DNA of 64,000 bases from assembly GCF_964204645.1 (NCBI RefSeq), contig NC_134031.1:18297910-18361909 (forward strand). The letters are read 5' to 3'. How positions within the stretch are numbered: the stretch's first letter is position 1; each line of letters begins with the position of its first letter. The DNA is from Tubulanus polymorphus. Its lineage: Eukaryota > Animalia > Nemertea. The translations under genes and the position numbers were made by a program. Positions 29,667 to 62,200 of this stretch are shown in pieces. The notes beneath the pieces were generated by a model. That model was not told where the DNA came from. It did no database searches and saw nothing but the letters and a program-made list of their open reading frames with translations.

Positions 29667-31019
29667 ATGGCTGCATCCAGACTGTGGATATGTTGTTTTC
29701 TGTTATTGGTATTAGTTATAATCGGTAAATGTTCTTACTTATTAATCATTTCTATCTAATATTCGCTTCTTAAATATTTGTAAATGGTTTTTTAACATAA
29801 TATTGATTCTATGATGTGTTTGAATTTTAATGATATATTCTGCCGTCTTCTGTATACTGCTTTTTGGTAAATTTGGTAAAGTTCACGAATTTCCCTTTAG
29901 ACTAGTTTGTAAAACAGCGATTTTTTAACTGTCAGATTATTTACACGTAAAACCCTTCCGTTTACAAATTCATTATAAGTCTCCTAGCGAACAGTTAAAT
30001 TATGAAAGTTAGGAGGTTCCTTCTCAGGTACCTATCTTTTTTGATTTTATAAAGATTTTTGTGAATTTTCATACTCTATTCCGCCTCTCTAGACTGCCAT
30101 TTGATGAGTTTTGTAAAATACAAGTATTTCCCATCAGAACAGTTTGTAAAACAGTGAAGTTTAAAACCCAAAATTTCAAATATTAAAAGCGAATTTTATT
30201 TATCAAAATCAAAATCAAACGATACGACGCTTCGAACTCTTACTAGAGATCATCGTCAGATGTCTGTGATAATCTATACTACACTGTAAAACTCATTCAA
30301 AGATGATTACGTATTTCTTCATACAAATTATGTATATATTTATATTTCTGTATGAGTAGCCGTATCGTCAGCACCGCATTCATCGAACAATCAGGCGGCT
30401 AATGTTGTTGGAAATGGTAAAGTCGTAGACACGGCAGCAGCAGCTCGTCAACCAAAAGGTATGATAAGAGATGGTTCCATCATTTTCGGTAAAGCTGGCT
30501 CTCTAAAATCAGTTCATTTTCGATGTTTTAACTGGATTATGTAGATATATATATATAGCGCGGATACCAACCCCCGCGTCATATTGGCCTGGTCAAATGT
30601 GACCTTTCTATTCGGTTAGACGCTTGCGTTTGACGGCCAGTATGGCGTCACGATTATGTGCAACCTCCATATCTATTTTATCGTTCAGGATTATTTTGGT
30701 TCAATTTTTATACGAAGTAAATTTGGATCAATTTCTATTCGCAATTCTTGTAGCTAAGAAAAAGAAAGGCGGTGGAAGAGGCTGGGGAGGAGGCAAAGGA
30801 GGTGGAAAAGGAGGCGGCAAAGGAGGTGGAAAAGGAGGTGGCAAAGGAGGAAAGAAGACTACCACAACTACAACTACCACTACAACTGTTGCTACAACTA
30901 CTAAAAATGTGCCGCCAACAGCATTACCGCAAGTAGACCCGAATCGCGCCACATCGCTCGCATTCAGCTCATCGCTGGCTCTCGTCATTAGCGCAACCGT
31001 CGTCTTCCTCTTCAACTAA
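29667..31019 (+). CDS. Secreted/putatively GPI-anchored Gly-Lys-repeat protein, paralogue B (~140 aa)
   Basis: Exons 29667-29724 (MAASRLWICCFLLLVLVII), 30360-30458 (AVSSAP...VVDTAAAARQPK), 30754-31019 (KKKKGGGRGW(GGGK)x5, poly-Thr, NRATSLAFSSSLALVISATVVFLFN) sum to 423 nt. Same 58-nt exon 1 and same phases as paralogue A. Confidence 0.8.
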
Positions 31020-31652: not shown

Positions 31653-32176
31653 AGACGGCTCAGCGCTGGTAGCGTGGATGAGGACACGAGACGAGTCAGC
31701 GCTGGTAGCGTGGATGAGGACACGAGACGAGTCAGCGCTCGTAGCGTGGATGAGCACACGAGACGAGTCAGCGCCGGTAGCGTGGATGAGGACACGAGAC
31801 GAGTCAGCGCTCGTAGCGTGGATGAGGACACGAGACGAGTCAGCGCCGGTAGCGTGGATGAGGACACGAGACGAGTCAGCGCCGGTAGCGTGGATGAGGA
31901 CACGAGACGAGTCAGCGCCGGTAGCGTGGATGAGGACACGAGACGAGTCAGCGCTGGTAGCGTGGATGAGGACACGAGACGAGTCAGCGCTGGTAGCGTG
32001 GATGAGGACACGAGACGGCTCAGCACCATCCTCCCACGGCAGGGATTCGAACCTGATGGCATCGCTACACTCAGCCACGGCATGTACCGGGGCAATCTCG
32101 ATGCCATCGGGTTCGAATCCCTGCCGGGGGAGGATGGCTCAGCGCTCGTAGCGTGGATGAGCACACGAGACGGCTC
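31653..32176. repeat. 36-bp GC-rich tandem repeat (~11 units) interrupted by a tRNA-like foldback
   Basis: Unit AGACGAGTCAGCGCTGGTAGCGTGGATGAGGACACG: ten consecutive copies, an insertion at 32026-32137, then one further copy. Confidence 0.95.
32026..32137. mobile_element. Foldback element whose inverted arms are tRNA 3'-half-like (B-box GGTTCGAATCC)
   Basis: 39-nt arms 32026-32064 and 32099-32137 are reverse complements with 2 mismatches. A related degenerate copy lies at 1203-1400. Confidence 0.65.
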
Positions 32177-36600: not shown

Positions 36601-39600
36601 ACAGAAAACAATACATCGGGCGTGTTTAAAACTAAAGGTTTTCATGAAATGTCTGAAGATGCTTTGTCCGTCGTGTTGGATAGTGATCAATTACAACTGG
36701 ACGAATTGGATATTCTTAACGCAGTTCGGGAATGGGCTACGGTGAATTCGGTTGTTCTGTCCAAACCGGTCAACGAGGTCGCCAAGAAGGTGATCTGGAA
36801 CGTGCGACTCGCGTTACTGTCGCCGGACGAACTGGCTAAAGTAGAGAAGGAGAACGAAAAGGATCACATGGTTCCGGTCGAGTTGATGTCGATGGCCTGG
36901 AGATTCCACGCTTTGCGAAAACCGGATAAAAAGAACGCGTTCACGAAACGTAGAAAGGGAACGACGCTGAGAGATTCACACAAAGGGTTGGAAAATTTAT
37001 AATATACGAGAAAAAACATTTCAAGTCAAATTCTAACGGCAATATACTGTACAATAAAGCAGTGGGGGGAGGGGGGAGTTGAGAGGGCCTGTTGAGGTGG
37101 ATATGGAATTTTCCATTAATTAAATGTTATCGGTATGGTAACCTAAGTGAACGAATTGTCAAGCCAAGTTCTAATCACAATAGAAAAGTGAAAAAATGAA
37201 CTTATCAAAAGAGGTCACGATCTTCTTGTTTAGTGGCAATCTGTGTCTGACGCTGATTCTATTTTCAATACTAAAATTATTTTGGATATTGCTATCGCTA
37301 TTGGATCTCAATGTTCGTAATTTAAGCGTAGTTCTTATTGAATTGTTTATGTCGCTGCCAATTTGTAACAAAAAGCTGAAATAAAATATCATTGTTTATC
37401 TGTTTAATACGAACCTGAAAGTTGAATTTAATCGTTCCTTTTTTATTAGCTGTAACGATCTGATATTGTTTGCGGAAGCCGTTTGGATAGTTTAGAGGAT
37501 ATGCGGGTGAGGAGACCGAACCGCTCGTCATCCAGCGGTTAAACTGAACACGATCTGTTAAATGAATAATAGACAAAATAGATTGTTCAGTTCGAGATAT
37601 CTAAGGAGAATCATAACGCTTAGATTTTTGCAATAAAACAAGAACGTTCACCTGCGGTAGAGGAATTCAGTTCCTGAAATTGCGCTTTAAAACCAAGTTG
37701 TGATGAAGACGGTTTATTTCCAACCGACTGAAACGTAACCTGCAAAATATGAGATCATTTGTTATTTCAAAAAATGTTTTCATATAATCCGTTCAATTTC
37801 CTACTGTTCTCTGGTACGTTAACAACTTAGTGCACACGACATAAACGCTGTCACCTGACACAAACGATACCTTTTGTTATTGATGCCAGTTGCTGCTATT
37901 GGCGAAGATGGTTCTAACTTATATGGAAAATTTGAATTCTTCTATTGCAAGAGATTAGGTCATTGACTGGCTTCCGGTGAAGCCGTAGTGAACACTCGTC
38001 GCCAGACTAGGTCCATATGAAATACTGAATACTACAGCGAAACGACCAAGATTTGGGTTCGAACCCATCTAAAGCTACCAAAATAGTCGTAGAATTCTTA
38101 ACTAACTTACCGTAATTTCATTTGTTAACGAGGTTACACCTTTTGGAGCATTAGCACTAAAGACGCCAAGTAGATTTCCATTTGCATCAGCGATCTGTTC
38201 AGATTATGAAGAAGACATTTTTTGAATATTTTATTTGATTTCATAAACCTTCAGTTATCATAAACAGGGGCCAGTTACTCAAAATTGGTTTGAGTTAGCT
38301 GGTCTGAGTTGCACAGTCGTGACTAGTTTTAAATCTCATGACTAGTCTTATGTGGTTAGTGGCAAAAAGTCCATTGTGACCACATAATTCACCCGCCGAT
38401 TATCTACAACCAAATATTGCCCCAATTTTAAATGAATTCAGTTGTCCATCACAGCAAAATAAATTTAATCTTTAATATCTGCGTTTAAATGATCTTGTAG
38501 TAATTTCAATCGAATTTACTGGTTCACTTACAGATACTGTATTCTTTTTCATGCCGGTGACGTCATCATTTATACGAAACTGGTCGAATACTACAGCTAT
38601 CAAAGTGCCCCCTGGTGACTGATCGGGCAGACGATATTTATAAATACATTGAGAATTGACGGGGAAGACATCCGGGTAGTTTGGTGACGTGAAAGTAAGG
38701 TTCTGCGAGGTACTCGTCCAATTTCCTCCACATCCGGTTACACTGTCGCGTAAACATAACCCTTAAAAATATTCAACAAATAGCCTGCTTTAGACCTGGA
38801 TCCAGTTTCATAAAGGTTGGGGGTAAATTATCCCAAAAATAAAGTGTTATGAATCAATTCTATAGTTATTTTTTCAAAACTAAGAGGGAAGTTTTGAAAA
38901 TAGCTCATGGACGTCGCTACTCTCTTAGTTTTAGAAATATCACTACTCTCTTTCCTCTAATTGTGGTTCTTTCTTCTATTGACGTAAAGATAGCGCTTCT
39001 AACAACTGTCAACGTATTTTTACTCCTCAATCGTTAAGTCACGTGTGAACTCCGTGGTAGATGGAAAGTGCACCGAAATCTTTTCAAAAACAGACGAAAA
39101 TTCAACACAATACTTTTTTCTTTTAATTCCTCAGATTGTTAGGTTTTACTTTCAATTCTATCGATCTATCTCGTGATAAGAAATGTATTCCCCTGGTACC
39201 TAAAACCTGTCCTTCGTCAACAAGCAGAAGAAAAACGATTTTTTGGGAATTTTCTCCTTTTTAATTCTATTTCGTGATATAACAACATCGCAGTACACAA
39301 TCCTCGATAAATAATCATTTCTATCAATACAGTGTGGTCGTCTAATATATTCCTTGTTTTGTGTGGTTAACATTCCGACCTTTTCGATCGTTTTTTTACA
39401 GTTATAGTTTAGCATATAGAATGATGTATGAATAAAATTCATTTATAATGTTGTTTCTTGTAGTTGTGCTTGAGCTGGGTTTTTTTTAGATAAAAGTACG
39501 TGTGGCCTCAAATAAAAGAGGAACGCTTTTTGACACCCGGATGCTCAACACATCGACACTAATCACCCACGTATGATATATATCGCCAGCATTACATATA

Positions 39601-41247: not shown

Positions 41248-44200
41248 TTATCGTAGTTCTAATTGGCCACTGGTAAGCGAGTAATACGCTCCTTTCACAG
41301 CCAGCAGTTCCTGGTGAGTTCCGAGCTCCACTACTCGACCGTGATCTATAACGGCGATGACGTCAGCACCTTGTACAGTCGACAGACGATGAGCTATGAC
41401 GATACACGTACGACCTTCTTTAGCTCGATCGAGAGCCGTCTGAACGATCTATATTGAGCAACAAGTAGAAAAATTATTGAAATTTTTATGAGAAAAAAAT
41501 AAATCACGATAATGTAATATATAAACCCCACACAAATAATCCAATATCAAGCTCTTTGTTTCCCATTTGAAGGAGTTAAAATCCCTAGTTTAAATCAGTT
41601 CATATTTTCCCATTTTCAATAAGTAAACTTTAGAGGCAAATCTTAACCGAAAAGCTGTGGAACTAGGTCCAGTTTTTGTCGTAATTTTGAATGTTTTCTT
41701 TGGTATGAAGAAAATTGAAATGTTTTGATTTTTGAATTGACAGGGTACGACACTAAGCTAAATTCAAATTCACCAACAAGTAAATAAATAAATAATCACT
41801 TCCAATTCAAGCATTATTGTTCAACACAATAAAGTAATTAAAACAGTTATCAACGTACCCTTTCATTTTCTGTGTCGAGAGCTGACGTGGCCTCGTCAAG
41901 TATGAGTATAGGCGGGTTACAGATTAAAGCCCTGGCTATAGCGACTCGCTGTTTCTGACCTCCAGATAGCTGCGTTCCCTTCTCGCCGACCATCGTTTCA
42001 TAACCCTGAATACATATCACACAAATATCAGCGACATTTCAAAAGTGACACATAAAATAAGTCTTAAACTGAATAGAGCTCCACAATTCTCTGTTAAGAT
42101 TCAACTGTGTATTTCAAATAGACTGTGTGTTGTTTAAAAGTAGCCAGTCTCATTGCATTCTAGAGCCTGTTTCAGAAACAAGTTGATCGTTTTGTAAGTG
42201 TTGGCTATCATATAACTAATGAAATCTTTAGTTGTTCTTTGAAGTGCATGTGACTCTGTTTTTTCTTTGGAGAAGGGGCCGATTGGTCCATACCGATTCC
42301 GGAATTCTCTTCTGGCGCGTTCCGACCAGAATACACTCTAAGTATTCCAGAATAGCGTAATCTGTAAACCTGATAGAAGCGGCCGGTAGAGAGTGTGATC
42401 GGGAATTGATATTCCTAAACCGGAATATGTTCAATCGAAACCTACCCATGTCTTGTTATAATTCAAATTCAATAACTTCGTGATAAAACTAACGAATTAA
42501 CGTAACGTTTACCTCGGGCAGAGCGGTGATGAAATCGTGGGCGTTGCTCATTGTTGCAGCGTTTTCAATCATATCCTGAGTCCACGGCGGCTCCAAACCG
42601 TAAGTTATATTCTCAGCAATAGTTTTATCGAACAGCACTGGTTCCTGGCTGACCACGGCAATACGCGACCGCAGAAACTGCGTGTTCAACGATCTGATAT
42701 CAACACCGTCAACGAGCTGAAGAAAATATTATCAATATGAATTTGAATATGAATTTCATTTCTCAATAAATATTTTTAAATCGTGTACATAATTACAATA
42801 TATAGCATTGACAGAATATGATTTATTGAGAGGACACCCCCAAGTCGAAAGACTGTACCAAATGATGGGGGGGGGGCAATTATCAGAAATGTCATTATAT
42901 AACATCCGAGGAATATTGAATAATTTTGAAAATGTGCGCCCAAAAACTGAGATCCACAATAAAAGACTCATCATCCGTCAGAAATGGCTGCAGTATCTAT
43001 GAACCCATGGCTTAAAGCTCGAAAGGTAGAAACTATTATTTCCCTATCATCCCTGTCTTAAGATAATTGACACAAAAAAAAACAATTGTATTTGAAAGAA
43101 TAATGAATAGTTGAACATCTTATCATATTCAATAACTTGATTGTATATATTTTATTTTATTATATTTTATTTTTATTTAACTTGAGAAAAAATGTCTCTT
43201 TATAGGAACTTGTACTATTGAATTACTACTACTATCATCATTATTATTATTAACATCGATTGTTGTGATTATATTAATGAGGATATAAGAAATGAACTGT
43301 AAACTAAACGTACTATACTCCCGTCGGCAACATCGTAAAGTCTTTGTAGTAACGAAACGATCGTACTTTTACCGCAGCCACTGGTTCCGACTAAAGCCAT
43401 CGTTTGACCCGATTTTACTTGAAACGATACTTTATCTAACACTGTCACGTCGGGACGCGTCGGATACTTAAAACACACGTCTTTATACGTCACTTCGCCA
43501 TGTATCTTATCCTGAAAAACAAAACAGCAGAAACATTTAGGGCCCGAAAAGAAAGGATGCAAGGTATTTGAGTTGGAAACTAACTAATATTTTTTTTGGA
43601 TATTGAATCCTCGGGACCCTGGGTAAGTCAACTAAAAATACATTAAAATACTGCTCAGTACAACCGATGAAACTTAGCTAAATACAATTATCAAACTTCG
43701 TAGAAGAACTAACCATAGTCGCCCCATCTTCAGAAGTGTTATCTATTTTCGGTTGTGTATCTAGCACTTTGATAATCATTCCGGCGGCAAGTTTCGCTTT
43801 AGAATAATCGGGTAACATCGACGATGCTTGACCGACCGATAAACCGGCGAATGCTACGGCGAAAAATACCCTAGAAATACATAAAATACAGATAATAGTC
43901 AACGACGGCACTTCGGAGTCACCCGCCATCGATGTCGACTCGCTCCTCCCGCTGCTACCGCCCAGTTAATGGAATTAGTCATAACCACGGGAATCCCGCG
44001 AATGACGTCATCGAATATCAATGAGGAAATCCGCTGCATATCATTTATAAAATTTCGGATAAAAAGCTCATTAAAACGTCTCCTATTCAGTGTCTGGATG
44101 TGGTGAGTAAATCAATGTTTTAATAATCTTCTATTACAGGTGGAAATTCAGTTAATTCGATTAATATTGCGTTGTTTGCTTCAATTTGTATGTTGTTAAT

Positions 44201-47200
44201 CGTTTATTAGAGAGGAACTCAGTCAGAGCGAGAGCGAGCGGCTCCCGGGCGGGTCGGCCAGTCTGTGCATATTCCATCTCCTGCCGTCAGAATACACATG
44301 AGATATTTCATAGTTCTATAAGGGCTGCATTTTTAAAAACATTTTTGCTGCTACTGAATAACAGACACTGACAGCAGAATCAGAATATATGGCCGCCGCC
44401 TTTATAAAAGCCAACACAAAGAATCGGCCTAGGCCTACTTGTTGAGGAGAGCTACCAGCTTTTGATTGGGAATTATCTGGATCTTTTTTTGCACCTCGAC
44501 TCTCTGAAGTCTTTGTCCACTCTATGAAAATACAATGAAGGTGGTATTCTGTGTTGGTTCCCCCTATAGAGGCTAGTCTCTCCTCCGTAGAAACTGAACT
44601 CAGACAATCTTCAGTTAGGAATTTATAAAATAAACACTTTTTTATCTTCAAATAGTTTCCTGTCAGTTTAAACGACCTGCACATTGTACATTTGTTTAAA
44701 TGAACTTCATGTTTTTCTACACGAGTGACTGAATGGCTGAAGAGATTAGAGGAGGAGCACTTCTTAAAAATAGCATTCTTGGTTTTTAAAGTGCACTTAT
44801 TAAAAGTACCTCCCTGAACAACTTCTTGATTTGAAGCTGTTTAGTTTAACTAGTGCCTTCCACAGCCCCCACTGCAATACAAGAATCTTGATCTCGAAGT
44901 CTAGACTAGAACTGCTGGTTGTCAGGCAAATATTGATCTAATTATCTTAACGAGAACTAGTGTCTAATTGATATGCTATCAGTGTCTCTCCCCCTCTTCG
45001 TTTCCCCACCGGCACCTTGGTCTATGGTTGTTGGTATTACGAGGGAGGAATGTGACTTTTTCTCACACAATACTTCAATAGATTATAATAGTAACTCTCT
45101 CAGCTGTGCTTCTGCTGCTGCTGCTGCTGCTGCGGCTGCTCTATATACTGCGTAAAGAGTGAATGACTCATGTATGTTTTAGAGCATTTTACTGATGATT
45201 ATAGCAGAAAGCAACAGATTCAGTCAGGAGAGAGAGAGAGAGTCAGTGTCGATAGGATTTAATTTATCTGCAAAATCACGGATTTCGATATTTGTGTTTA
45301 GTAAAGGTACGTGTATATGTATATAAAACGATACTGCAGTACACTCTATCCAGTATTGACTGAGGTAAGATCAGTAATAAGAGATGATACTGTCTGCGTC
45401 TGCTGTCTACAGGTGTTTCACCGAGACACGGCTGCTGTACCCAGTTCTACAGTCTCCAGTTGACTATGCTGTAATAGTCGTAATACGCAGACTTGTACAA
45501 GGAGAGAAGAGGGTTTAGTGAGGGACGACGGGTGAAAATACCTCTATTTCCGATGTACTGCTTTGTACTCTGGGTATAAGCTAAACCCTTTCAACATTTA
45601 ACTTTCAAGCATATTTTCAACTCGAATGCTTCGATGTCAACAGTAACCTCAGTTTTTTTAAATCTATGTCTGTGTTCGTGTATTTTACGTATGATTGTCA
45701 TGTTGTATATGATTGCTCTATTACTGTCACTGTATATTGTGTTCTGTATCGCTCTCGATTACCGAGCTCTCCTCGTATAATGTGTTTTGATTACGAATCC
45801 ACATCCGCAAATTAATTAATCAGACAACACATTATTGATAATGTGAAAAAAGAATGTTTTATTCGGAAGTACGCAGTCGCTGCTGTATGTCTATATTGTG
45901 AATACCTTTGAGAATAGCCATGTATAATTACTCAGCAGTAGCTCTGCCCACCGGGGGTCAGTCTATTTATCTGTGTAGCAGGCCGTGTCTTCTTATGTTT
46001 GACAACTTTTCAGTTCTTAGAGTCTGTTGACCTAGTTTCATTTGAGAGTTCAACTAAAATTAATTATTTGTTTCTACCATTTGATTGAAATTAAACTATT
46101 TTAAAGTGAAACCCCCGTGTTCGTATATCTGAATCCTGTCTGATGCCAATTTTGTGTCTATTCTAATTAGTAGTTATGATTTCGCTAAAATTGATGTTTG
46201 AACAGCTTGTCGTCATTATAACTCCAACTATCGGATATGATATGATGATGAGGTGCTCTACACAGCCTACCTACTGGTAGCATACACAGCCACGATTGAC
46301 ACTGTTTTTTATGTTTACAGGTGTCTGAAGTCTGTGATTATGATCTCTAAGTGATTGCGTTGTTGATGATGTTATGATAAGCTGTTATGGTAAGTACTGA
46401 TAAAACATTGGTGTTTTGGTATCTGAATCAGGTGAAGAGATGAGACCTGGCCGGACCCGACCCGACCCTGGCTATATTCCTCAGGAGTTGACGAACATAA
46501 GATGCCTGCACTATGTTTCATTCTGCATTCATTCTGTTATTGTGGCTGCTGGAAGTACCAAGGCTTCAATCTCCCTCAAAAAAAGAAAATCAACCTTAAT
46601 TTTGGTGTAATTGACTCTGGTAGGGGTAGCAGATATTATATAAGGGGTGGCTGATTTTCAAAGGGATGGATGTAAAAATGAAAGGGGCGGCCGCTCCTCT
46701 CTAAACTTATTGGGGAGGAGAACACTGGATGGCTCGACCTTGTAGAAACTGTGCCCTCTATTAGTGGCCCAGTTCGGGTATTAGAAGTGAATTTTTCATA
46801 AGAGATACTCCAAGGTCTCATGTGGTTCTCATGTTGTGTCCGAGCTAAGTAAATAGGAAGAAAAGCATAATTTTTCAGTGAGTTTAAATGATCTATGATC
46901 TATGATCAGTTTACTGTGTTCCGTAATAGCCGAGAAATTGGCAGTAATATTTTTATGTGATTAGCGTTGGAACTATTAATGACAATAAATCAGTTAACGT
47001 TTTTATATAAATCCTGATGACCCTCGAATCACAATGCCTAATGGTAGTTTATTTATAAGCGTGTTTATACAAATCCAAGACGTTCCTGCTGAAAATAGGT
47101 CATCGCTAGAAAGAGAACTATAGATATTTCATTTCTGGCTATTCTTTTATGAGGTGTTAAGTGTCATTATTTTTATTTTGAACGACACACTCTACGTGGC

Positions 47201-50200
47201 TCAGGGCGCCGTAGTGCGCAGTACTGACTGGCTCTCTGTTTTTAGGTCTGTTCGTTTGTCTCTGCCGTATGTGGAATATTACTGATATTTACAGGTAAGA
47301 AGCAGAACTCAGATCAGATGATCTAACATCGATTTGAAGTCTAGATTCTATTAGCAATTACACCCTGTATACAGTACATGTGTTATCTGACATTGCTGCT
47401 TCTAGGCAATGTAAACCAGTAAACAAGCTAATATTGGAGTAATTCCTCTTATTATGAAACTCTACGCACTGTCTGATAAAGGCACTGGTAATTAATAATA
47501 TGGCATCTTGCAGCAATCAGGATTGAGAATTCCTTCACAAAGTCTTCAAGGATTTCATCCCTAAATAATATCTGTCTATTAGACTGGTAAGGCCCGTGGC
47601 GTAGTTTTAACCATTTCGTCAAAACAGGGAGCGCAGACCGGGTCATGCGAGATATTCCAGGTACTACTGATACAGCTCTGGTCATTCTAGTAAGAGATCT
47701 GTGAGTCTTGGGTTCGAGATAAAGGTTCTGGGGCCACAAGACTGTTTCAGAGCTTTAAGACCAGCCTTAAGCCATCTGAGTTATATAACCAATCTAAGAC
47801 CAGTGCAACCGAGGTCGCAGTATGTACTCAATAAGTTGTGAGATTATAAGATCCCTGGCAAGAGATAACTCTTGGGTCTTCTGGCATTCTTATAGGTTGT
47901 GATTGATGACATCTTCAACTATGAGTAACGAATGAAATCAGATAATATTCAGGTCAGATTTCTATTTTCTGGGTCAATTTAGAGCATTTTACATTCATGA
48001 GAGCCCTAAACACGCAAATTAATTTCAGTGTTTGTTATAAACACCTCTCTAGTAGAGCTATGTAGAACTTAAGGTATTTTTTATGCCTGGCCAATTAAAA
48101 GTAGATATTTTTTTAGGTTAGTAGGGTTTGTTGTTCGTCTGTTGAACAACAAATCTTTGTATGAATTCTGTTGATTGAGAGGGGCAGGGATGAACGAGTG
48201 GAAAGTATAGTAATATTAGTGTGTATTAATAGTTGGTTTATGGTGTTTGTGAAGGGAGGGGGAGAGGGAGAGTTGTGACTCACAACTTCGGATTTCAGTT
48301 TCTGATGTAAAAAACAATGTTTACCTCTCGCTATAGTCTCCCCCTATCTCCATCTCCTACAGTCTGTCATAGAATGATGGATTGAGAGTCTGATAATCAT
48401 AGAATCTTTACTAGAAAATTTGAGACCCTGGACAAAAAAAAAATAGTTCTAAAATATTCTATACAGGGTACGAGAGATAAAGATGTAAGGACAGGGAGAG
48501 GAAGGCAAGAGTGCATCGGCCGATTCTGGTGCCATAGCAAACAATATGTATATACTTGTTGATTCATTGAATTGTATTTTGAAAAATGAAACAAGTTGAT
48601 GTCAAGTGCCCTTTTTTGCTCATGGTTTGACATAGACAGTGCCCTCCCCCATATTAGTGAATTTTGCCCTTATACAATATAAGAACCCATCATATAAGGC
48701 TGCTGGTGAGGCACTGACTGTGTCGTGTCAGGGAGGTCCACCTCCCTGGTTGCGTTAACCGTGTCCAGCAGCAGACGCATAGCGACTAAGTCGTGTTAAC
48801 CGTGTCCCGACTATTTGCTCATTCTCATCTCTGATGATGTCATATTCTCCCAATATGAATAACGAGAGAATCGCTCGGATAAAGATTGAGATCTGCCCTT
48901 GATCTACTTTTAAAAATCATCGTCATCTTCTTCACTGCTGCTGCTGCTGCGATGACTCAATCTTCTCAGATTCAGGGCTGTAGAAATATTCTATTTATCA
49001 CAGTTTTCTTTCTGTATCTCATGAAAAGAGTAATGATTCCGATTGATAAGAGAATTCAAGCTCTCTCCTCTCTCTGTGAGGTTGACAAGTTTGGAATGTA
49101 AAGATTCTGAATCAATCAATTCTCGTGTAAATATATTGATGCTGCTGCTGCTGCTGCTGCAATAGGGTACGGTCACTATCAGTCAAACCATTGTTAGGTT
49201 AATACTTCTCTATTTACAAAATGAAATCATATGCAGCCTCTTGAGCTCAGGAGACCGTGACCATCAGATCCAGCGGTATTGTGGCGGCGTTGAGACCTCT
49301 ATGATCAGTTCATCTCCTGTGGGGTGAGCCTGGGTGATACATGCCTCTATATTTGTAGAGAGGGCTGTAGGGTCTACAGTGATGATTTCTGTGTATTTGT
49401 AGAGAGGGCTGTAGGGTCTACAGTGATGATTTCTGTTTGTGTATTTGTAGAGAGGGCTATAGGGTCTACAGTGATGATTTCTGTGTATTTGTAGAGAGGG
49501 CTGTAGGGTCTACAGTGATGATTTCTGTTTGTGTATTTGTAGAGAGGGCTGTAGGGTCTACAGTGATGATTTCTGTTTGTGTATTTGTAGAGAGGGCTGT
49601 AGGGTCTACAGTGATGATTTCTGTGTTTGTGTATTTGTAGAGAGGGCTGTAGGGTCTACAGTGATGAGTTCTGTGTTTGTGTATTTGTAGAGTGGGCTGT
49701 AGGGTCTACAGTGATGATTTCTGTGTATTTGTAGAGAGGGCTGTAGGGTCTACAGTGATGATTTCTGTGTATTTGTAGAGAGGGCTAAAGGGTCTACAGT
49801 GATGATTTCTGTTTGTGTATTTGTAGAGAGGGCTGTAGGGTCACAGTGATGATTTCTGTGTATTTGTAGAGAGGGCTGTAGGGTCTACAGTGATGATTTC
49901 TGCGTATTTGTAGAGAGGGCTGTAGGGTCACAGTGATGATTTCTGTGTATTTGTAGAGAGGGCTGTAGGGTCTACAGTGATGAGTTCTGTGTTTGTGTAT
50001 TTGTAGAGAGGGCTATAGGGTCTACAGTGATGAGTTCTGTGTTTGTGTATTTGTAGAGAGGGCTATAGGGTCTACAGTGATGAGTTATGTGTTTGTGTAT
50101 TTGTAGAGAGGGCTGTAGGGTCTACAGTGATGATTTCTGTGTATTTGTAGAGAGGGCTGTAGGGTCTACAGTGATGATTTCTGTGTATTTGTAGAGAGGG

Positions 50201-53200
50201 CTATAGGGTCTACAGTGATGATTTCTGTGTTTGTGTATTTGTAGAGAGGGCTTTAGGGTCTACAGTGATGAGTTCTGTGTTTGTGTATTTGTAGAGAGGG
50301 CTGTAGGGTCTACAGTGATGATTTCTGTGTATTTGTAGAGAGGGCTGTAGGGTCTACAGTGATGATTTCTGTGTATTTGTAGAGAGGGCTGTAGGGTCTA
50401 CAGTGATGAGTTATGTGTTTGTGTATTTGTAGAGAGGGCTGTAGGGTCTACAGTGATGATTTCTGTGTTTGTGTATTTGTAGAGAGGGCTTTAGGGTCTA
50501 CAGTGATGAGTTCTGTGTTTGTGTATTTGTAGAGAGGGCTGTAGGGTCTACAGTGATGAGTTATGTGTTTGTGTATTTGTAGAGAGGGCTGTAGGGTCTA
50601 CAGTGATGAGTTATGTGTATTTGTAGAGAGGGCTATAGGGTCACAGTGATGATTTCTGTGTATTTGTAGAGAGGGCTGTAGGGTCTACAGTGATGATTTC
50701 TGTGTATTTGTAGAGAGGGCTGTAGGGTCTACAGTGATGATTTCTGTGTATTTGTAGAGAGGGCTATAGGGTCTACAGTGATGATTTCTGTGTTTGTGTA
50801 TTTGTAGAGAGGGCTTTAGGGTCTACAGTGATGAGTTCTGTGTTTGTGTATTTGTAGAGAGGGCTGTAGGGTCTACAGTGATGATTTCTGTGTATTTGTA
50901 GAGAGGGCTGTAGGGTCTACAGTGATGATTTCTGTGTATTTGTAGAGAGGGCTGTAGGGTCTACAGTGATGAGTTATGTGTTTGTGTATTTGTAGAGAGG
51001 GCTGTAGGGTCTACAGTGATGATTTCTGTGTTTGTGTATTTGTAGAGAGGGCTTTAGGGTCTACAGTGATGAGTTCTGTGTTTGTGTATTTGTAGAGAGG
51101 GCTGTAGGGTCTACAGTGATGAGTTATGTGTTTGTGTATTTGTAGAGAGGGCTGTAGGGTCTACAGTGATGAGTTATGTGTATTTGTAGAGAGGGCTGTA
51201 GGGTCACAGTGATGATTTCTGTGTATTTGTAGAGAGGGCTGTAGGGTCTACAGTGATGATTTCTGTTTGTGTATTTGTAGAGAGGGCTATAGGGTCTACA
51301 GTGATGATTTCTGTGTATTTGTAGAGAGGGCTGTAGGGTCTACAGTGATGATTTCTGTTTGTGTATTTGTAGAGAGGGCTGTAGGGTCTACAGTGATGAT
51401 TTCTGTTTGTGTATTTGTAGAGAGGGCTGTAGGGTCTACAGTGATGATTTCTGTGTTTGTGTATTTGTAGAGAGGGCTGTAGGGTCTACAGTGATGAGTT
51501 CTGTGTTTGTGTATTTGTAGAGTGGGCTGTAGGGTCTACAGTGATGATTTCTGTGTATTTGTAGAGAGGGCTGTAGGGTCTACAGTGATGATTTCTGTGT
51601 ATTTGTAGAGAGGGCTAAAGGGTCTACAGTGATGATTTCTGTTTGTGTATTTGTAGAGAGGGCTGTAGGGTCACAGTGATGATTTCTGTGTATTTGTAGA
51701 GAGGGCTGTAGGGTCTACAGTGATGATTTCTGCGTATTTGTAGAGAGGGCTGTAGGGTCACAGTGATGATTTCTGTGTATTTGTAGAGAGGGCTGTAGGG
51801 TCTACAGTGATGAGTTCTGTGTTTGTGTATTTGTAGAGAGGGCTATAGGGTCTACAGTGATGAGTTCTGTGTTTGTGTATTTGTAGAGAGGGCTATAGGG
51901 TCTACAGTGATGAGTTATGTGTTTGTGTATTTGTAGAGAGGGCTGTAGGGTCTACAGTGATGATTTCTGTGTATTTGTAGAGAGGGCTGTAGGGTCTACA
52001 GTGATGATTTCTGTGTATTTGTAGAGAGGGCTATAGGGTCTACAGTGATGATTTCTGTGTTTGTGTATTTGTAGAGAGGGCTTTAGGGTCTACAGTGATG
52101 AGTTCTGTGTTTGTGTATTTGTAGAGAGGGCTGTAGGGTCTACAGTGATGATTTCTGTGTATTTGTAGAGAGGGCTGTAGGGTCTACAGTGATGATTTCT
52201 GTGTATTTGTAGAGAGGGCTGTAGGGTCTACAGTGATGAGTTATGTGTTTGTGTATTTGTAGAGAGGGCTGTAGGGTCTACAGTGATGATTTCTGTGTTT
52301 GTGTATTTGTAGAGAGGGCTTTAGGGTCTACAGTGATGAGTTCTGTGTTTGTGTATTTGTAGAGAGGGCTGTAGGGTCTACAGTGATGAGTTATGTGTTT
52401 GTGTATTTGTAGAGAGGGCTGTAGGGTCTACAGTGATGAGTTATGTGTATTTGTAGAGAGGGCTATAGGGTCTACAGTGATGATTTCTGTGTTTGTGTAT
52501 TTGTAGAGAGGGCTTTAGGGTCTACAGTGATGAGTTCTGTGTTTGTGTATTTGTAGAGAGGGCTGTAGGGTCTACAGTGATGAGTTATGTGTTTGTGTAT
52601 TTGTAGAGAGGGCTGTAGGGTCTACAGTGATGATTTCTGTTTGTGTATTTGTAGAGAGGGCTAAAGGGTCTACAGTGATGAGTTATGTGTTTGTGTATTT
52701 GTAGAGAGGGCTGTAGGGTCTACAGTGATGATTTCTGTTTGTGTATTTGTAGAGAGGGCTGTAGGGTCTACAGTGATGATTTCTGTGTATTTGTAGAGAG
52801 GGCTGTAGGGTCAGTTCTGTGTTTGTGTATTTGTAGAGAGGGCTTTAGGGTCTACAGTGATGATTTCTGTGTATTTGTAGAGAGGGCTGTAGGGTCTACA
52901 GTGATGAGTTATGTGTTTGTGTATTTGTAGAGAGGGCTGTAGGGTCTACAGTGATGAGTTATGTGTTTGTGTATTTGTAGAGAGGGCTATAGGGTCTACA
53001 GTGATGATTTCTGTGTTTGTGTATTTGTAGAGAGGGCTGTAGGGTCTACAGTGATGATTTCTGTGTATTTGTAGAGAGGGCTATAGGGTCTACAGTGATG
53101 ATTTCTGTGTATTTGTAGAGAGGGCTATAGGGTCTACAGTGATGATTTCTGTGTATTTGTAGAGAGGGCTGTAGGGTCTACAGTGATGATTTCTGCGTAT

Positions 53201-56200
53201 TTGTAGAGAGGGCTTTAGGGTCTACAGTGATGATTTCTGTGTTTGTGTATTTGTAAAGAGGGCTATAGGGTCACAGTGATGATTTCTGTGTATTTGTAGA
53301 GAGGGCTGTAGGGTCTACAGTGATGAGTTCTGTGTTTGTGTATTTGTAGAGAGGGCTATAGGGTCTACAGTGATGATTTCTGTGTTTGTGTATTTGTAGA
53401 GAGGGCTGTAGGGTCTACAGTGATGAGTTCTGTGTTTGTGTATTTGTAGAGAGGGCTGTAGGGTCTACAGTGATGATTTCTGTTTGTGTATTTGTAGAGA
53501 GGGCTGTAGGGTCTACAGTGATGATTTCTGTGTTTGTGTATTTGTAGAGAGGGCTGTAGGGTCACAGTGATGAGTTCTGTGTTTGTGTATTTGTAGAGAG
53601 GGCTATAGGGTCTACAGTGATGATTTCTGTGTATTTGTAGAGAGGGCTATAGGGTCTACAGTGATGATTTCTGGCGATGTACGAAGATCTGATTGATGAA
53701 CAAGCGGAATTATTCGATAATCTCGACTCGGATTCACTGTTTGATTATCTCATACAGAATGGAGTACTTGAACCGAATACAGCTGAGGAAATACGGCATG
53801 AGAGACAGGGAGAAGAGGTAGGCATCCAGTTCCACCGTGGATCAAGTCCCACCAGAATCCATTTGGCCCTATAAGAGTTTGAACTTTAATTGATTTAATT
53901 CTAGTGTGTACTCTAACAAGAACTGTGGAACTTGAAACTGGCCCGTGTAGACGGTAGTTAGTTTTCAGTTCATCTGAATAGTCACCAAACATGATCCCTG
54001 AATGTTCTGAGCAGGATTTCTAATCTCACTGTAGAAATACCCTTTCAATCACTGATGTTGTATCGATGCCCTGAAATGTGTCGCTTGAATCAGAGTTGAA
54101 TTTCAGTAAATTGTTTCATCGTAGGTGAATAAAGCTTTATTGGAATATTTGGATCAGAAAGAGAACAATGCGACCAATCATCACGCGTTATTTATTAACG
54201 CCCTACGACAGACGGGTCGGTTACAGCTCGCTAATTTATTAGACGTCGGACACAGGATAGAACCGCGCAGATGGAATTCACTAGGTAACGTCGTAAATCT
54301 TCAATTCATCGAAATCATTCTCTATTTCAATGTCACAGTTTTAATGAGACTGTATTTTGTATTACAGGTTACCTAAACAGAACCAGACACAAAGGTAAGC
54401 CACTCAAAGATGTTTGGGGAGGGAAGTTCCATCAATAGCTAAGTTACCCCTTTGAGGTCCAGTTCCATGACTAAAGACCATTCTAAGACCCCTTTAGCTC
54501 TTTAGCCAATCTAACAGAGTTAAGACCATTTTTGGACATTAAGTATCGACTATCAAACCCAGGGAACTAAGTAGCTGCAGTAGTACGACATCAGTCATAG
54601 ACTATTTCAGTTCCATAACCGATCAGAAATCAACAAATGCAGACCAGTCTCAATCCTCAGGATAAACTGATATCGCTATTATTTTGTAGGTCAGGTGTGT
54701 TTGATTTTACAAGTGAACGCTGTTGAGTTATACCCGGATGGTTTACCCCCGGGGTTTATACCCCGCGACCGGCCCGGGGGTAAGAGTTACTGGATCAGTC
54801 TCGACGAGTTGAAACTCGAGGATGTGATCGGCAACTCGACGCTGCACCTGCAGGTCAGCACCTCGCAGCAGTTGCTCGCGGCGGACAACGACGACAACCA
54901 CCACCTCGCGACCAACCGGAACAGCCTGCTACAATTAACAATCATAGAACCGGACGACCCGTCGTCGTGGCAACAGAATCCCGCCGAGAAGAAATCGCGA
55001 TGTTTTTGCGGTTGTTTTAAAAGTTTATTCGGGAAAGAGAAGAAAGCGTCGGCTTCGAAATCGAAGAGTTATCAGAATAATCAGAACCAGCAACAGCAGC
55101 AGGAGACGGTCGGATATCGGTTAGCCAGCGGGGTACACGTGTTAGAACCCGTTCCCGAGGAGGGAGGACACGCCTCCTGCGACAACAATAAGAACAATCT
55201 AGCGTCATCGCGACAACCGAACGGCTCGTCGCCGGGCGGGTCGTCGAGCGCGATCGATAAACAACCGACCAATCAGCAACAACGATCGAGTCGCGAGATC
55301 ACGCAGTCGGTCGCCGTCGACGACGAAGAGCTTCGCGTCAAAGCGGAAACGTTGCACGGTAAATCGAACCGTTTCTATCAACAATTACAACAATCGGACA
55401 GCACGAGTCGCGAACGGTTGCTAACGTACTTCGAGCAAGATCGTAAGATTCTCGTGCTCGACCTGATGTACGAGGACGGGATTATAATCGTGTGCATCTG
55501 TACGAAACCCGATGCCGTTCAGCAGCTGCAGCACGACTTCGAGAACGGACGTCTCGTTCAGGATCTCGAGACGGTACTAGTTACGCCCTCTATACTCGCC
55601 GATATCTACGTTCAATCGATGAAGCTACAATTAACCGTCGAGGAGGATGAATTCTCTAAAGCGTTCAAAGATCTACAAGTGCATTAATAATAATCCGAAT
55701 AATTAATTATTAATCTGGTTGTTGATTGGTTGAATTTGCTCATATATACATATATATATATCACTTGGTCAAATATCGGTTTCTGGATAACGGTGTGCCA
55801 GTCAGTGTGCCAAGTGACTGTATATCTATGCTGTGTGCCGAGTAGGTTCCTATCGACGTGTGCCGTGTGCCTATCAGCTGTATTTCTACTGACCGTGCCC
55901 GGCGGATTTTCTTGCATTTTTCGTAAATAACCGATTCAGCAAACGCTTGGTAGAGGTTTTTAGAAACACATAATACGAGAGCGTTCTCTCTCAAAGAATG
56001 AGTGTGCGTGGTGCAGGTGTCATTGTGCTTTTTAACATGGATATAAAACTGATTCAATGATTATTTTCAGCAATATGTCACGCAATATGCAAGCTTTCGG
56101 TTTGAGTGATTCTCATTCCCCCCTCTTCCCCTATGAATGCCCGGTGTTTATAGTGTGTTTATAGATGCAATCACTCGCTATATTTGTGGTCGCCCTAATA

Positions 56201-59200
56201 TCGCACGAATGTCACAAACAGTTTTATCGCTTTTGTAGTAAGAATCTGTCTCAAAAAAAAAGTACCAACGACCCCCACCAGACCACTGTTAAACATGTCA
56301 TCCAGTTTTGAAGCATTTTACATGTTATGATCTGATCTGTCGAATATAACCATGAATTCTATTGTAACTGATCCAGTTCCATTGTTGTGGGTTGAAATTT
56401 GACTCTAAACTCAAAACTAAAAAGCTAGATCAAGAAATGCCAAAAAAAGTTCTACTTAGATTTGGATGAGGCCTAGAAAAACCTCAATACTTAAACCTCG
56501 ATATTTAAAGGTGTTTATGATGTAAATGTTACTAGTGTTTTACGCGATGTCGCTAATAAAATTTGTGTCTCTTGAAGAGATGTTGTATTTGCCTCAGCGG
56601 AGAGGAACTCTGACCGAAGTCTCACTAACGATGGCTTTCAGTATCGCGGGGCGCAGCAGTCATTGCATAAACATCGCCATTTAAAATGAAATGATCACAC
56701 TTTACACTAGACAACTGCTGAAATCTCGAATATCAATAATAAGATGTATCATTCATCTAATATCAATTTTATAGATAATATCAGATATATGAGCTAATGT
56801 CTATTTCAGCTTGACTTGAGACTTCAGTTTTGGCAGTACATACCTGATATAGGTCTCAAAAGGACAAGAATTTACTGGCAGTTGATCTAAAACATATGGT
56901 TAATCTAAATTTATCCAAGAAAACAGTGTCTCTTTTCTATGATGCAACCCCTTTCAATGAAGACTTATTGGCGATCCTTCAATACAGTGTAAAAAGATAA
57001 AAAATCGATGTTTTAGTTCAACTGCCCGTCAATTGTAGACACTTAAAGACCTGTCATGTATGTATCCCCACAACTGACCGAACTAGGTCAACTGATGTCC
57101 TCTCAAGTCTCGTTGAAATATAAGCTTATATTAGAGAGAGTGTCATGTGTGAATGCATTAAAATTACGATCTGAAAAATGCTGAAATCATATTTTTAATA
57201 AAAACTGCTGCTTGAAGTATAAAACAAAAACTCAGTTTGATCTCTGTTTCTCAACAACAACATATCTGAACAGATATTAGTGCAGTAGCTTCTCAATAGG
57301 TGTCACCGATATACGGGATCCAGTTGCACACTTGTGAGTGAAGAAACTGTGTTAACTCGTAACTGTAGGATTGGCTTCATGGTTAGTTTTTGAAGGACGA
57401 AAATAGTCCAATATAAAAGTACAAATTTTTCTGTCATTAATGCAGCTTATGAAGTAAGTTGGGGGTACCCGCGGTATTAGACCTTCCCACCAATGAAAGA
57501 TTTTGACTTTTGTAGCGTAAAGAACCGTTCATTTTCTAGTAATTATTGCCGTAGGTTTGTAAGAAAGAGGATCTTTTTTATTAGAATCATGAGTTTTTGA
57601 AAAATATATAATCGCTAAAAAGAGGTGCATATAATTTCATTTGTGATAATATAATTATTTAGACTAATATATATATTGTGTTGAATAGTGGTTTGTGATA
57701 AGTTTGCTGTAGTTAACTATATTGAATTGAGGGGGGGTTAGTGACCGGGATTTCGGGTTTAAAAATCATGACGTCCATGAATTCAAGTAATGCTTGTTTG
57801 TTTTATAGCGATTTAAACATATTAATCATGATTCGTTCGATTTGTTCGCGTTCGAATTCAAAAGATAATTTATGTGAGGTGTTGAATAATAGTGTCTCTT
57901 GTTGTTTGATTTAAATTCGTTTTAATTTAAAACTTGATCCTGTCGTCAACCGAAGCCAATCATATCGCTTGGAAGCAGTTCCGCAGTTAAGTTAATTTTC
58001 GGTAGTGAATTCGACGGTGGGCGATGCGTATATCGTTTTAGAGTCCAACTGAACTGTGGAACTGGTTCCCGTTCATAGATGTTCAATGATGCATTTTCTG
58101 CCTCTGAAATATCGCTGCCATATTTTCAAATCAGGGGATTACATTTTGTTATATCAGTAATTAATGTGTTTGTACAGTAGGGTATGGTTGAGTGAGGGGG
58201 TGTTACCTGCCTGTGAGTGGCTGAGGGGGTTTGCCTGCCTGCGAGTGGCTGATTAGGGGTGTTACCCGCCTGTGAGTGGCTGAGGGGGTTTGCCTGCCTG
58301 TGAGTGGCTGATTAGGGGTGTTACCTGCCTGTGAGTGGCTGAGGGGGTTTGCCTGCCTGCGAGTGAAGTGGTGCAAATTTCAACAAGCTTCTATGTAATT
58401 AGTATAAATTATAATGATTGATAAAACACCATTATGTTAATGGAAACAATTGTGTAAAATGTGTAATTAATTAATAGCCGAAATAAATTGAGCAAACATC
58501 GCATGAATTTATAGTTTATTAGTCTTTCATTTATTTCTAAGGAAAGATATCTGTCTCCAGCATTCAATCTAAGAGCTCAATGGAAATGAATTCCACACTT
58601 CAACATAAAACCGACTCACTCAGGATAGGGAGGTAGAGGTTACTGGTAGGCTTTCAGGACCGGGTTCCACAGTTCTCGAATACTATTTACATCATCATAC
58701 AATACTATTAACATTACGTAAGAATTGAAACACTGGAAATGATTTCATTTTAACTTAAGAGTCATAACTTTACCGAGAACTGTGCAACTGAGTCCTGGTT
58801 TGAACAACGGTAAGAGGAGAATTAGCAAACTGTAAAATGTAAGGACACATTTTTCATGAGTTATTGAAGCAATATTTCATTTATTTCAAGTATTCTCAAA
58901 TGCCGAAGAAAAACTTAACAATTTGGCCCACCGATACATTAAAACTAGGGCCAGAGAACTGATTTTATGTGAATTGGAATTAAAGGCCCAGGACCCAGCT
59001 CCACTTGCCAGTTAAATAAGGCTCTTTTCAATTAAAATTAGTTCATTTTCAAGAGTTTCATGGTTCTTGATTAAGATTTGACATCAATTTCAACTTTTTT
59101 TCAGTGATATATGTGGAACTGGGTTTCAGGCAGTAAGCCTTTGACATGGCCAACTCAGACTTTCGACCAACTCATAACTTGGCACAAAAACGAAATAATT

Positions 59201-62200
59201 TTCTGACTTTCGAACATATTTTCCGATCCTTAACTCTGACTGGCACTGAACACAGAACGATTTCAGAATCAGGCATCATTTATTGTACTACGTGTACCTA
59301 TTATACATGATTTGCATAAGAAAAAAATGTTCACTTACTTGTAAACGTTTGTAGGTTCCATATCTCCCATCTCAACGAGGTACGCCCCAAATCTGAACGC
59401 TCCTCCATAAATGAAAAACACTATCGCCTGACTGAATGCGTATGAAAATCCTCCTAGAAATGCTCCCCTCAGATTTTTCCTAAAAGCAAAAAGTTTTTTA
59501 CTTTAACTTTTGCAACGCCAACACGCCATGTCTGGTACTAAATTCAGAACCAAGTTCTTGAGTGAAATAGACGGATTTTTTTACTCTTTTCAAGTTTTCC
59601 TTGACTAGCTAAAATTCAATTTAAAAATCAGACTCTTAAAACTAGACTCTTAAAACTAGACAATGATCTAATCTAATTCTATTGAGTCATCGATTTTTGA
59701 CTTTGGAACTGGGTCCTGGTTTGTCAAGTTTAATATCAAACTTAGAACTATTCTCATGAAAACTGTTTTAGAAGGACATCTAGTGGTATATAGCTTCGGG
59801 ATACATTAACATACTTGTATGGAATGAGTAGTTTGTCTTGGTAGTAACCGTACATTCGCACTTCTAGCGTCAATCCTTGAACCGTTCTCACATTCTCGAT
59901 GCTTTCTGTTGCAATCTGATAACAAGAGACACATAGATAAAAGGTCAGCTACTTTGATTTGACTTGGCTTTTCCCAGACGTGTACGTTGCTTTCCGTGAT
60001 TTTATGCGCTAAGAATCCGATCAATTAACACAGTCAAATAACTATGACATACTTGTAGATGGAAACTTTGATTTTATGCACAATCTAGCAATCTCAACAA
60101 TCTCGACATTTCCCTGACTTATAGGTTTTTTTTTCAGATAAGTGGCCACCCTGAATGAGTTAGAGGTGAGCCGCATTCACACACAGACAGTTTAAACCAG
60201 CACCGCCCATACCCTACCTACCTCTCCAGCCTCTTCTAACAGTTTAGAATCTTTCTTCTGATCAACTCCCATCGCTCGCATTTGAGCGTATCCTAAATAT
60301 ATCATGGAAAAAACGTTTTTCTATAGTGAAACCCACTATAAGTCGTCACATTACTGACAAGACTAATTTATTCAGTCAAACTCGGGTAAGTCATCACAAA
60401 TACATTACTGAAGTCATTACTACTTTTGACTCGCGCAATTTGTGTACATTGTTTTTCCAATCTAATTTACAAATCAATATAATGTCTTAGCTATGATGAC
60501 TTAAGCAGTTTACTGTATTTACAGTTCAAATCATCATCAATAAAAAGATGATTTTTCTAACGAACCTGCCAGCGACATTAATGGAACAGCAGCGATTAGA
60601 AGTAAAGTGAGTTTCCAGCCGTATATGAATCCAATAACGAGACCGGCTACGATACCGACTAAAGCCTGCAACACTACGTTCACTCTTATACCGGTCGCCT
60701 GGAGAAATACAACCACAATCTCTAAAGCTCAACAGTCATATATCCCTCAATATTTCACAGGTGATTTTTCAATTTTCCCGAATGGAAATGGGGCCTTCGT
60801 AAAAATGAACAGATACCGTCTTACTATACAGTCAACCTTTTAGTGGTGACTGGTTGAAAAAGGTGATTTTCATGAAGAATTGCAGAAGAAAATTGACATC
60901 CCAGAACTATGCCTCTCTTAGTGCAAAATGAATTATCAAAATATTTCCTGAATTAGAGCGAAATACATCAATTCCCAAATATTTCCAAACCGAGTAATGT
61001 TATTTTGAAATGTGATCATGACTTACATTTTTGACTAGGGAAGCATCAGTTGCCAGTCTGGTCGTAAGAGCCCCGGTCGAGTGTCGAGTCTCATCGAAAT
61101 AAGCCATATCCTGCCTTAACAGTGATTGAAATGACATGTACCTCAATCTCATCGTTAACCTTTCCCCGGACAATCCAAAACAAAACGTCTACAAATAATA
61201 CATTCAAAAGAGTTACTCTGAATTGTAGCTGAAGATTCAGTTTCACAAAAATACTTTCAATCATTTGAAAAATTGACCCTGGGGCTGTTCCATAGTTCAA
61301 AAAAGACTAGACTTAGCCCAGTTTGGTCTTATAAAAATCGAAAAAATTGATACTGATCATAAGAGATTTGGATTGAGCCATTACGTTTGTGCCATGGCCC
61401 CGGGTCGAGTTCAAAATTTGAGACTTAGACGCAAGTTTGGCTCTAATCAAATGAAGTTAATAATACTGACCGTTAAATAGTTTCCTAAACCGCTCAGAAT
61501 TCCTAACACTAAAAACATCATGCTCCAGAAAAATGCTCCGTTTTTCAGTTCATCTCCCGTCTCGGTGAAAACCTGAAACAAGAAATTATATATGAGGCTT
61601 GACGCGAAAAGTACTACATCAAATATTATCCATCTAGATTTAAACAACCAGTAATATCCTTAAAGCCTTGATTCACAATTCCCGAAAAAGTTCAATCTAA
61701 CGTTTAAAGGTTAGGCCTAATTTAGATTTCACAACTTAAACCGCTTGAAGCTTAAAAACTTCATAGATCTGTATCTGGGTCTTTCCCTCCTAATTCCTTT
61801 CCCTGCTTAAAACCCTTCCTGATTCGTTCTCCCGCGTACCTTCAGCATTTCACTGAACAAGATGGCAAAAACAGGCATCAGAGAACCAGCTATTACACTG
61901 CCTAAAAATCCAATTAAGATCAGATACCACTCGGGGAAATTCAATCTGAAAACTCGCATGAACGTCGGGATATCAACATCTTCTTCCTGAAAGCAGAGAA
62001 ATGGGAATTTTGTAAGAGATTGAAATGAGTACATCCATGTGATTAATCGAAATAAAGTAAGATTAACGTTGAAAACTCACCAGAGCATTCGAACCAAAAG
62101 CATGGACCTTAATCAATTTAGATGTAATATACATGGACAAGAGTTTTCTATAAAATTTGTGCGTTTTAACGTTTGAAATCTTACTTTATTATGAGAATCT

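Follow-up and report, generated by a model that had tools for sequence, protein, structure and literature searches.

A 92-copy minisatellite with an acceptor-like site and an upstream ATG in nearly every unit, ending next to the start codon of a CARD gene in Tubulanus polymorphus

Locus-specific minisatellites located immediately 5' of a gene, among them the human INS variable number tandem repeat (VNTR), 5-HTTLPR and the repeats of yeast promoters, can change expression through their copy number. For repeat length acting on splicing, the nearest established dial is the (TG)m(T)n tract of CFTR intron 8, a polymorphic U/G-rich repeat which tunes the adjacent acceptor, and for control by an overlapping upstream open reading frame (uORF) the known case is ATF4 uORF2. 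In amphioxus, the 'mirage' minisatellites of Adh3 and of the globin genes BflGb6 and BflGb9 are tandem copies of the end of an intron together with the start of the next exon; they are unstable in length and undergo concerted evolution, and regular splicing is undisturbed by them (PMC3087553). Here a window of the ribbon worm Tubulanus polymorphus genome (the whole stretch analysed, 64 kb, positions 18,297,910 to 18,361,909 of contig NC_134031.1, assembly GCF_964204645.1) is described, in which a tandem array of 4.3 kb ends directly before a gene encoding a CARD protein. The preferred reading, held with moderate confidence, is that the array is a young locus-specific VNTR in which only the last copy serves the gene and the other 91 copies are tolerated passengers.

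All coordinates are positions in the window. On the + strand, Tandem Repeats Finder (TRF) reported the array at 49350-53673 with a period of 50, 91.9 copies, 90% matches and a score of 6209, and it was the sole TRF array there. When cut at each TATTTGTAG, the array was parsed into 92 head-to-tail units, mostly 44, 48 or 50 nt long with a few of 40-43 or 49 nt, comprising 23 sequence variants with a mean identity of 96.7% among the full-length cores, so that the earlier note's satellite of about 90 copies before a CARD gene is confirmed. By its unit size (the class of about 10-100 bp) and its head-to-tail layout the array is a minisatellite, or VNTR. Its + strand is 72% G+T, with a GC skew of up to +0.61, and CpG is zero or near-zero, as in the surrounding non-coding DNA. 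The unit and the copy nearest to the gene are as follows.

49350 to 53673, + strand: minisatellite unit, a 42-nt core TATTTGTAGAGAGGGCTGTAGGGTCTACAGTGATGATTTCTG plus a TG-rich linker of 2, 6 or 8 nt (TG, TTTGTG or TGTTTGTG)
53632 to 53673, + strand: last, ATG-proximal unit, a CTATAG variant with no hairpin, in which AG|A at 53640|53641 would give a 36-nt leader

Across 43000-57000, exons are CpG-rich (observed/expected 1.3-2.1), and introns and the array are CpG-poor (0-0.6).

Both edges of the array are sharp. At the left edge unique sequence passes into the first unit (...gcctcta|TATTTGTAG), and at the right edge the last unit reads ...GATGATTTCTG|GCG|ATG (TTTCTG, then GCG), with the main ATG at 53677, so the array stops 3 nt short of the start codon. 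The last unit therefore runs straight into the GCG-ATG of the CARD open reading frame (ORF), as had been claimed, and the terminal copy is continuous with exon 1 of the gene. No unit-like sequence, including degenerate old units, was found in either flank by local alignment against shuffled sequences (p 0.35-0.99), and a 10-nt match, AGGGCTGTAG, about 370 nt upstream of the array was within chance. With no resemblance to the unit in either flank, the array amounts to a clean amplification of just the 42 nt preceding GCG-ATG, and each copy therefore repeats the acceptor-like TTTGTAG|AG and the upstream ATG (uATG) of the leader. In this the locus resembles the amphioxus mirages, where a genuine copy also lies at the array edge, continuous with the exon, and many copies keep the AG. 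It differs from them in that each copy also repeats a uATG and in scale: the globin arrays have 3-6 copies of 150-160 bp and Adh3 has units of 10-72 bp, compared with 92 copies (4.3 kb) here. In addition, the presumed junction here lies in the untranslated leader, so that, unlike the amphioxus junctions, it is not checkable against the protein.

The downstream gene is LOC141908216. The translation of its exon 4 (331 aa) retrieved a single database protein, P0001, which was 100% identical over the query and is the RefSeq model 'uncharacterized protein LOC141908216 [Tubulanus polymorphus]' of 441 aa. Searching P0001 back against the genome recovered three exons in the window, and the 27-nt exon 3 was placed by eye.

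53677 to 53817, + strand: exon 1 of the CARD gene, residues 1-47, with its donor at 53818
54125 to 54284, + strand: exon 2 of the CARD gene, from P0001 against the genome
54368 to 54394, + strand: exon 3 of the CARD gene, 27 nt, from P0001 read against the sequence
54690 to 55687, + strand: exon 4 of the CARD gene, with a low-complexity linker, a conserved C-terminal domain (a TRADD-N-like lead) and the stop codon

The gene does encode a CARD, as the earlier note had it: PF00619 matches residues 9-86 of P0001 with 31.7 bits, above the cut-off of 23.9, exon 1 by itself reaches 22.3 bits, and the relatives P0002 and P0003 also have Pfam CARD matches. Two in-frame TGA codons just upstream of the main ATG make an N-terminal extension of the protein impossible; together with the CARD of the HMMER relatives, which begins at residue 6-8 as in P0001, they place the true start at 53677. 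The gene belongs to a conserved family and has an intact ORF and intact splice sites, and no paralog was found in the genome with P0001 as query.

The unit was found only at its own locus when the whole 268 Mb assembly was searched with the DNA and with a 28-nt unit pattern allowing up to 3 mismatches; the pattern gave 83 forward matches, all within the array, and 0 reverse matches, and a control pattern gave 0. Confinement to one locus in 268 Mb means that the unit is neither a dispersed satellite nor part of a transposon. The array had no match at E<=1 among the known RNA families of Rfam, including hammerhead-type, and the ORFs neighbouring it had no significant Pfam match. A locus-specific minisatellite just upstream of a gene is what the promoter and 5'-flank VNTRs also present; unlike the CARD array, those do not abut a start codon and do not repeat an acceptor-like site and a uORF.

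The order of the unit types along the array is ABHBBEFLAMIJIFNOAAGDAACEDCK-PAAGDAACEDCK-IBHBBEFLAMIJIFNOAAGDAACEDCK-GDCBQBARSCCGAHHJTUFGFBEVHW, which contains two long exact recurrences.

49376 to 50642, + strand: 1,267-bp block with an exact recurrence 1,830 bp downstream (51206-52472), a higher-order duplication of about 27 units
50094 to 50634, + strand: 541-bp block with an exact recurrence 563 bp downstream (50657-51197), a 12-unit sub-block

The 26 gene-proximal units contain 16 unit variants, and the first 66 units also contain 16. The exact block repeats and this distribution of variants indicate that the array grew recently, by block duplication, mainly in its 5' two-thirds, which is the typical unequal-exchange behaviour of a minisatellite; the exact internal duplications, in the single haplotype seen, also suggest instability of array length. 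That the assembler created the array length or the exact duplications is very unlikely, given an ordered higher-order variant pattern with a diverse 3' part, clean edges and a length of 4.3 kb that is well within long-read length. What speaks for such an artefact is that exact repeats of 1,267 and 541 bp are prone to mis-sizing and that an amphioxus mirage was mis-assembled in a draft genome (PMC3087553).

For the origin of the array, the 42 bp directly before the CARD start codon would have been duplicated in tandem with short TG-rich filler, and unequal exchange or replication slippage would then have multiplied blocks of units until 92 copies (4.3 kb) were reached, with the signal within the 42 bp and the leader uATG copied along. 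This signal is slightly more likely to be the 3' splice site of an intron in the 5' untranslated region (UTR), giving a 'mirage'-type junction repeat, than a core promoter. The last copy, the sole one continuous with the coding exon, would serve the gene with a short leader and one overlapping uORF. For the remaining 91 copies, the most likely status is that of passengers tolerated within an intron or in upstream DNA.

The acceptor-like site TTTGTAGAG (TTTGTAG|AG) is kept in 91 of the 92 units. With the score defined as the pyrimidines at -20 to -4 (of 17) plus YAG, the site of the units has 11-12 of 17 pyrimidines, compared with 9-11 for the three real acceptors of the CARD gene, and it has a U-rich tract as well as a branch-like motif, UGAU, about 20 nt upstream. 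An equally good acceptor-like site, AGCCCTCTCTACAAATACACAG|AAA, is also present on the minus strand of the array, in 32 units. Judged from its motifs, TTTGTAG|AG is a predicted 3' splice site that could work, at a probability somewhat below even; it is less probable that the 42-nt unit is a promoter piece, and plain leader or upstream DNA would account for the rest. Counted from the last AG to the ATG, the leader of about 36 nt given in the earlier note is 36 nt; the collapsed acceptor-plus-leader sequence given with it had been built from the consensus and is not that of the actual last copy.

That leaders in this genome may be spliced close to an ATG is made plausible by the BTB-domain-like gene of the same window (ORF 36127-37002, + strand), in which an acceptor-like ctcttttttcag lies 17 nt upstream of the ATG, with a good donor-like site, AAGT|GTAAGT, located near 35925, about 185 nt further upstream; this arrangement suggests a 5'-UTR intron ending near the start codon. 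Paired with the exon-1 donor at 53818, the acceptors of the array would give exons of 177 nt for the last copy, then 221, 270, 320, 368 and 418 nt, and longer ones onward. Exon definition would then favour the last few copies, and the leader would have one to few uORFs and not a graded dial from 1 to 90. The CFTR tract, in comparison, is simple sequence at one acceptor, whereas the CARD array has 92 copies of a whole acceptor-like site.

The earlier note had also placed a CTGTAG-GGT-CTACAG hairpin in each copy, and this did not hold. The hairpin is perfect in only 55 of the 92 units. Among the 83 full-length cores the third stem base is G in 55, A in 19 and T in 9 while its partner is unchanged, and 8 units lack a base in the 3' arm. 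For the canonical unit the folding energy is -11.1 kcal/mol, modestly better than shuffles (z -1.97), and for the last unit z is +0.48; the CTATAG of the last unit leaves the ATG-adjacent copy without the hairpin. The hairpin was rejected as a conserved structure, since the stem is broken, with no compensating change, in 37 of 92 units and folding of the last unit is no better than that of shuffled sequence. The variation of the array is not shaped by structure.

At least one ATG is present in 91 of the 92 units, with 106 upstream ATGs in total, and 99 of 107 counted ORFs (the main ORF included) terminate on the TAG of the next TTTGTAG. The commonest uORF peptides are MISVYL (32), MSSVFVYL (16), MISVFVYL (12) and MSYVFVYL (12). 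The tiny uORFs ending on the TAG of the next acceptor that the earlier note had described for nearly every copy were thus recovered, and so was its out-of-frame overlap of the last one with the main ATG.

53664 to 53696, + strand: last uORF, overlapping the main ATG out of frame and starting 13 nt before it

The context of the last uATG is good (G at -3), so that under any reading this uATG is likely to matter: the main ORF should be translated less, unless the cap site falls downstream of this uATG. The arrangement is like that of ATF4 uORF2 in that the last uORF overlaps the main ATG out of frame and would lower translation if the uATG is in the mRNA. Unlike in ATF4, the uORF peptide here comes from repeat sequence, and nothing was found that shows its conservation or a regulated re-initiation.

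The same uATGs are central to another explanation, in which the array lies in an unspliced 5' UTR and a 4.3-kb uATG-filled leader cripples translation on this haplotype, as a recent mildly deleterious or null expansion. This is improbable for a gene of a conserved family with an intact ORF, intact splice sites and a complete RefSeq protein model. In its favour, an intact ORF says little on present function because the expansion is very recent, the genome has no paralog to buffer or reveal a loss, and the CpG content of the array, which is that of its non-coding surroundings, is also counted in favour of this explanation.

A further explanation is the dial of the earlier note, in which many of the 92 acceptors are used and array length sets the leader from 36 nt to more than 4 kb and the uORFs from 1 to about 100, as a heritable regulator. 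All copies but one keep TTTGTAG|AG, the U-rich tract and the UGAU motif, with scores equal to real acceptors, the uORFs are regular, and the array is evidently unstable, all of which would suit a dial. Homogenisation alone, without selection, would nevertheless keep the copies alike, the hairpin is not maintained, and tens of uORFs would make a leader nearly untranslatable, which would leave an on/off effect at most. The published junction minisatellites, moreover, splice normally (PMC3087553). The dial is accordingly given little weight, and the fallback of the earlier note, a neutral expansion in which the last AG alone is used, is preferred. A broader version, in which the array acts as a functional battery of 3' splice sites or start sites that are used in a cell- or allele-specific way, with copy number setting leader length and uORF load, is rated slightly lower still.

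The claim that each copy is an acceptor stood as far as motif and score are concerned, but outside the array each strand of the window has acceptor-like sites at least as good at a density of 5.2 per kb, so any 42-nt piece has about a 20% chance of containing one. Several observations weigh against the passenger reading preferred here. No upstream exon, transcript or cap site was found for the CARD gene. If the unit is a promoter piece, or lies within an unspliced leader, the copies may not be harmless. The size of the array is also a difficulty: at 4.3 kb it is about 6 times longer than the largest other array (753 bp) in the 264 kb over which sizes were compared, and 'ordinary by-product' may undersell it. 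Lastly, a core promoter fits about as well as a splice site, because a TATA-like TATATTTG at 49348 stands exactly 30 nt before the A of CAGT, the classical spacing of TATA box to initiator.

49348 to 49380, + strand: TATA-box/initiator look-alike, TATATTTG and then CAGT with its A 30 nt later, spanning the junction of flank and first unit

Under this core-promoter explanation the array would be a VNTR whose 42 bp consist of a TATA-like box, an initiator and the first 17-19 nt of the mRNA, with transcription initiated at CAGT in one or more of the last units. The mRNA would begin about 18 nt before the ATG, the uATG would lie about 5 nt from the cap and be mostly skipped, and upstream copies could change how strong the promoter is or give rise to additional starts. 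Inducible and immune genes typically have promoters of the TATA type. The TATA/CAGT pair, at about 0.1 per kb per strand, is much less frequent than acceptor look-alikes (5.2 per kb); TATAWW-N21-26-CAGT had 13 matches on both strands of the window against 5.5 expected. This pattern was picked after seeing the sequence, and nemertean core promoters are uncharacterised. The full TATA occurs only at the junction of flank and first unit, 4.3 kb from the ATG, while the inner units and the last one read TGTATTTG, and shifting the upstream regulatory DNA by 4.3 kb should harm a promoter more than an intron. On balance a core-promoter VNTR is considered unlikely, with a chance that is still appreciable.

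With regard to how common such arrays are, twenty 10-kb pieces of the same chromosome (200 kb) contained 67 tandem arrays of period 10 or more, about 1 per 3 kb. At this density, by rough arithmetic, chance alone should place an array edge within a few bases of a start codon many times genome-wide. The CARD array is a very large representative of a known kind of repeat, and its 4.3-kb size is unusual. Elsewhere in the window, a 36-nt x 10.3 minisatellite with 95% identity lies at 31653-32024 and is open in several frames on both strands, and three short (CTG)n microsatellites, all on one strand, lie in the 4 kb upstream of the array (45109-45149, 48935-48951 and 49139-49161).

Upstream of the array, the only strong donor look-alike is GGG|GTGAGC, about 22 nt before it. 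As an ancestral partner of the acceptor-like site it was rejected, because the intron before expansion would be only 33 nt. The look-up returned no contigs encoding P0001, and a metagenome scan with the first 23 nt of the coding sequence gave only a chance match to an unrelated 1.96-Mb contig. Comparison of the leader with those of relatives gave no result: the contig of P0014 (70% identity) is cut at its 5' end and P0002 (34% identity) is too distant. In the paper library searched, nothing was found on spliced-leader (SL) trans-splicing in nemerteans, the one paper naming all three terms having Nemertea only in its reference list, and SL RNA genes were not searched for. A scan of the locus for bacterial promoters and terminators was set aside as irrelevant to a eukaryote.

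If only the last copy is used, the locus would be the largest example seen of the ribbon-worm genome amplifying short gene-edge pieces, and would show how well splicing or initiation withstands dozens of decoys. Should the copies be in use, the locus would offer a natural example in which repeat number controls the translation of a CARD adaptor; with a working battery of sites, this innate-immune or cell-death adaptor would be under a throttle that is tunable in the germline and may also vary somatically. With 92 near-identical candidate acceptors and uORFs before a single-copy gene with a short first exon, the locus is a test bed for these questions.

For the protein itself, the C-terminal approximately 115 residues (residues 327-441 of P0001; 55340-55684, + strand) are conserved, and 57 library proteins match P0001 at E<=1e-10 in HMMER, many of them across this domain. 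No Pfam match was found in the C-terminal domain of P0001 or of the eight C-terminal-domain relatives scanned (TRADD-N PF20694 / PF09034 included), and no PDB match was obtained by profile or with Foldseek. In the ESM Atlas the domain led to TRADD-like_N clusters with a features score of 0.93 and a TM of 0.73. An AlphaFold2 (AF2) model of the domain (pLDDT 91) aligned to the TRADD-N structure 1f2h with Z 4.5 and a root-mean-square deviation of 4.4 over 98 residues, tied with unrelated alpha/beta folds. A putative adaptor with a CARD plus a TRADD-N-like domain is plausible from these models.

The CARD gene lies antisense in an intron of about 15.4 kb of a minus-strand ABCB-type transporter, which was recognised by ABC_membrane and ABC_tran matches. 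The exons bounding the intron are as follows.

43681 to 43965, - strand: exon of the host ABCB-type transporter on the low side of the intron, translation read by eye, with no Pfam match of its own
59338 to 59502, - strand: exon of the host ABCB-type transporter on the high side of the intron, ABC_membrane at 5e-5, profile positions 214-259 of 274

The neighbour of the low-side exon, at 43272-43583, has an ABC_tran match of 7e-11. The array makes up about 28% of this ABCB/P-glycoprotein-type host intron and is read as C/A-rich RNA when the host pre-mRNA is made.

At the start of the window, 1-9649 (+ strand) contains a long run of Ig-like exons, each of about 90-100 aa in its own open frame, which fits a perlecan-like gene. 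Two further ORFs on the + strand, 27406-28101 and 30624-31019, have (GGGK)n runs, Thr/Ser-rich stretches and a hydrophobic C-terminal tail, and may encode paralogous mucin-like membrane proteins.

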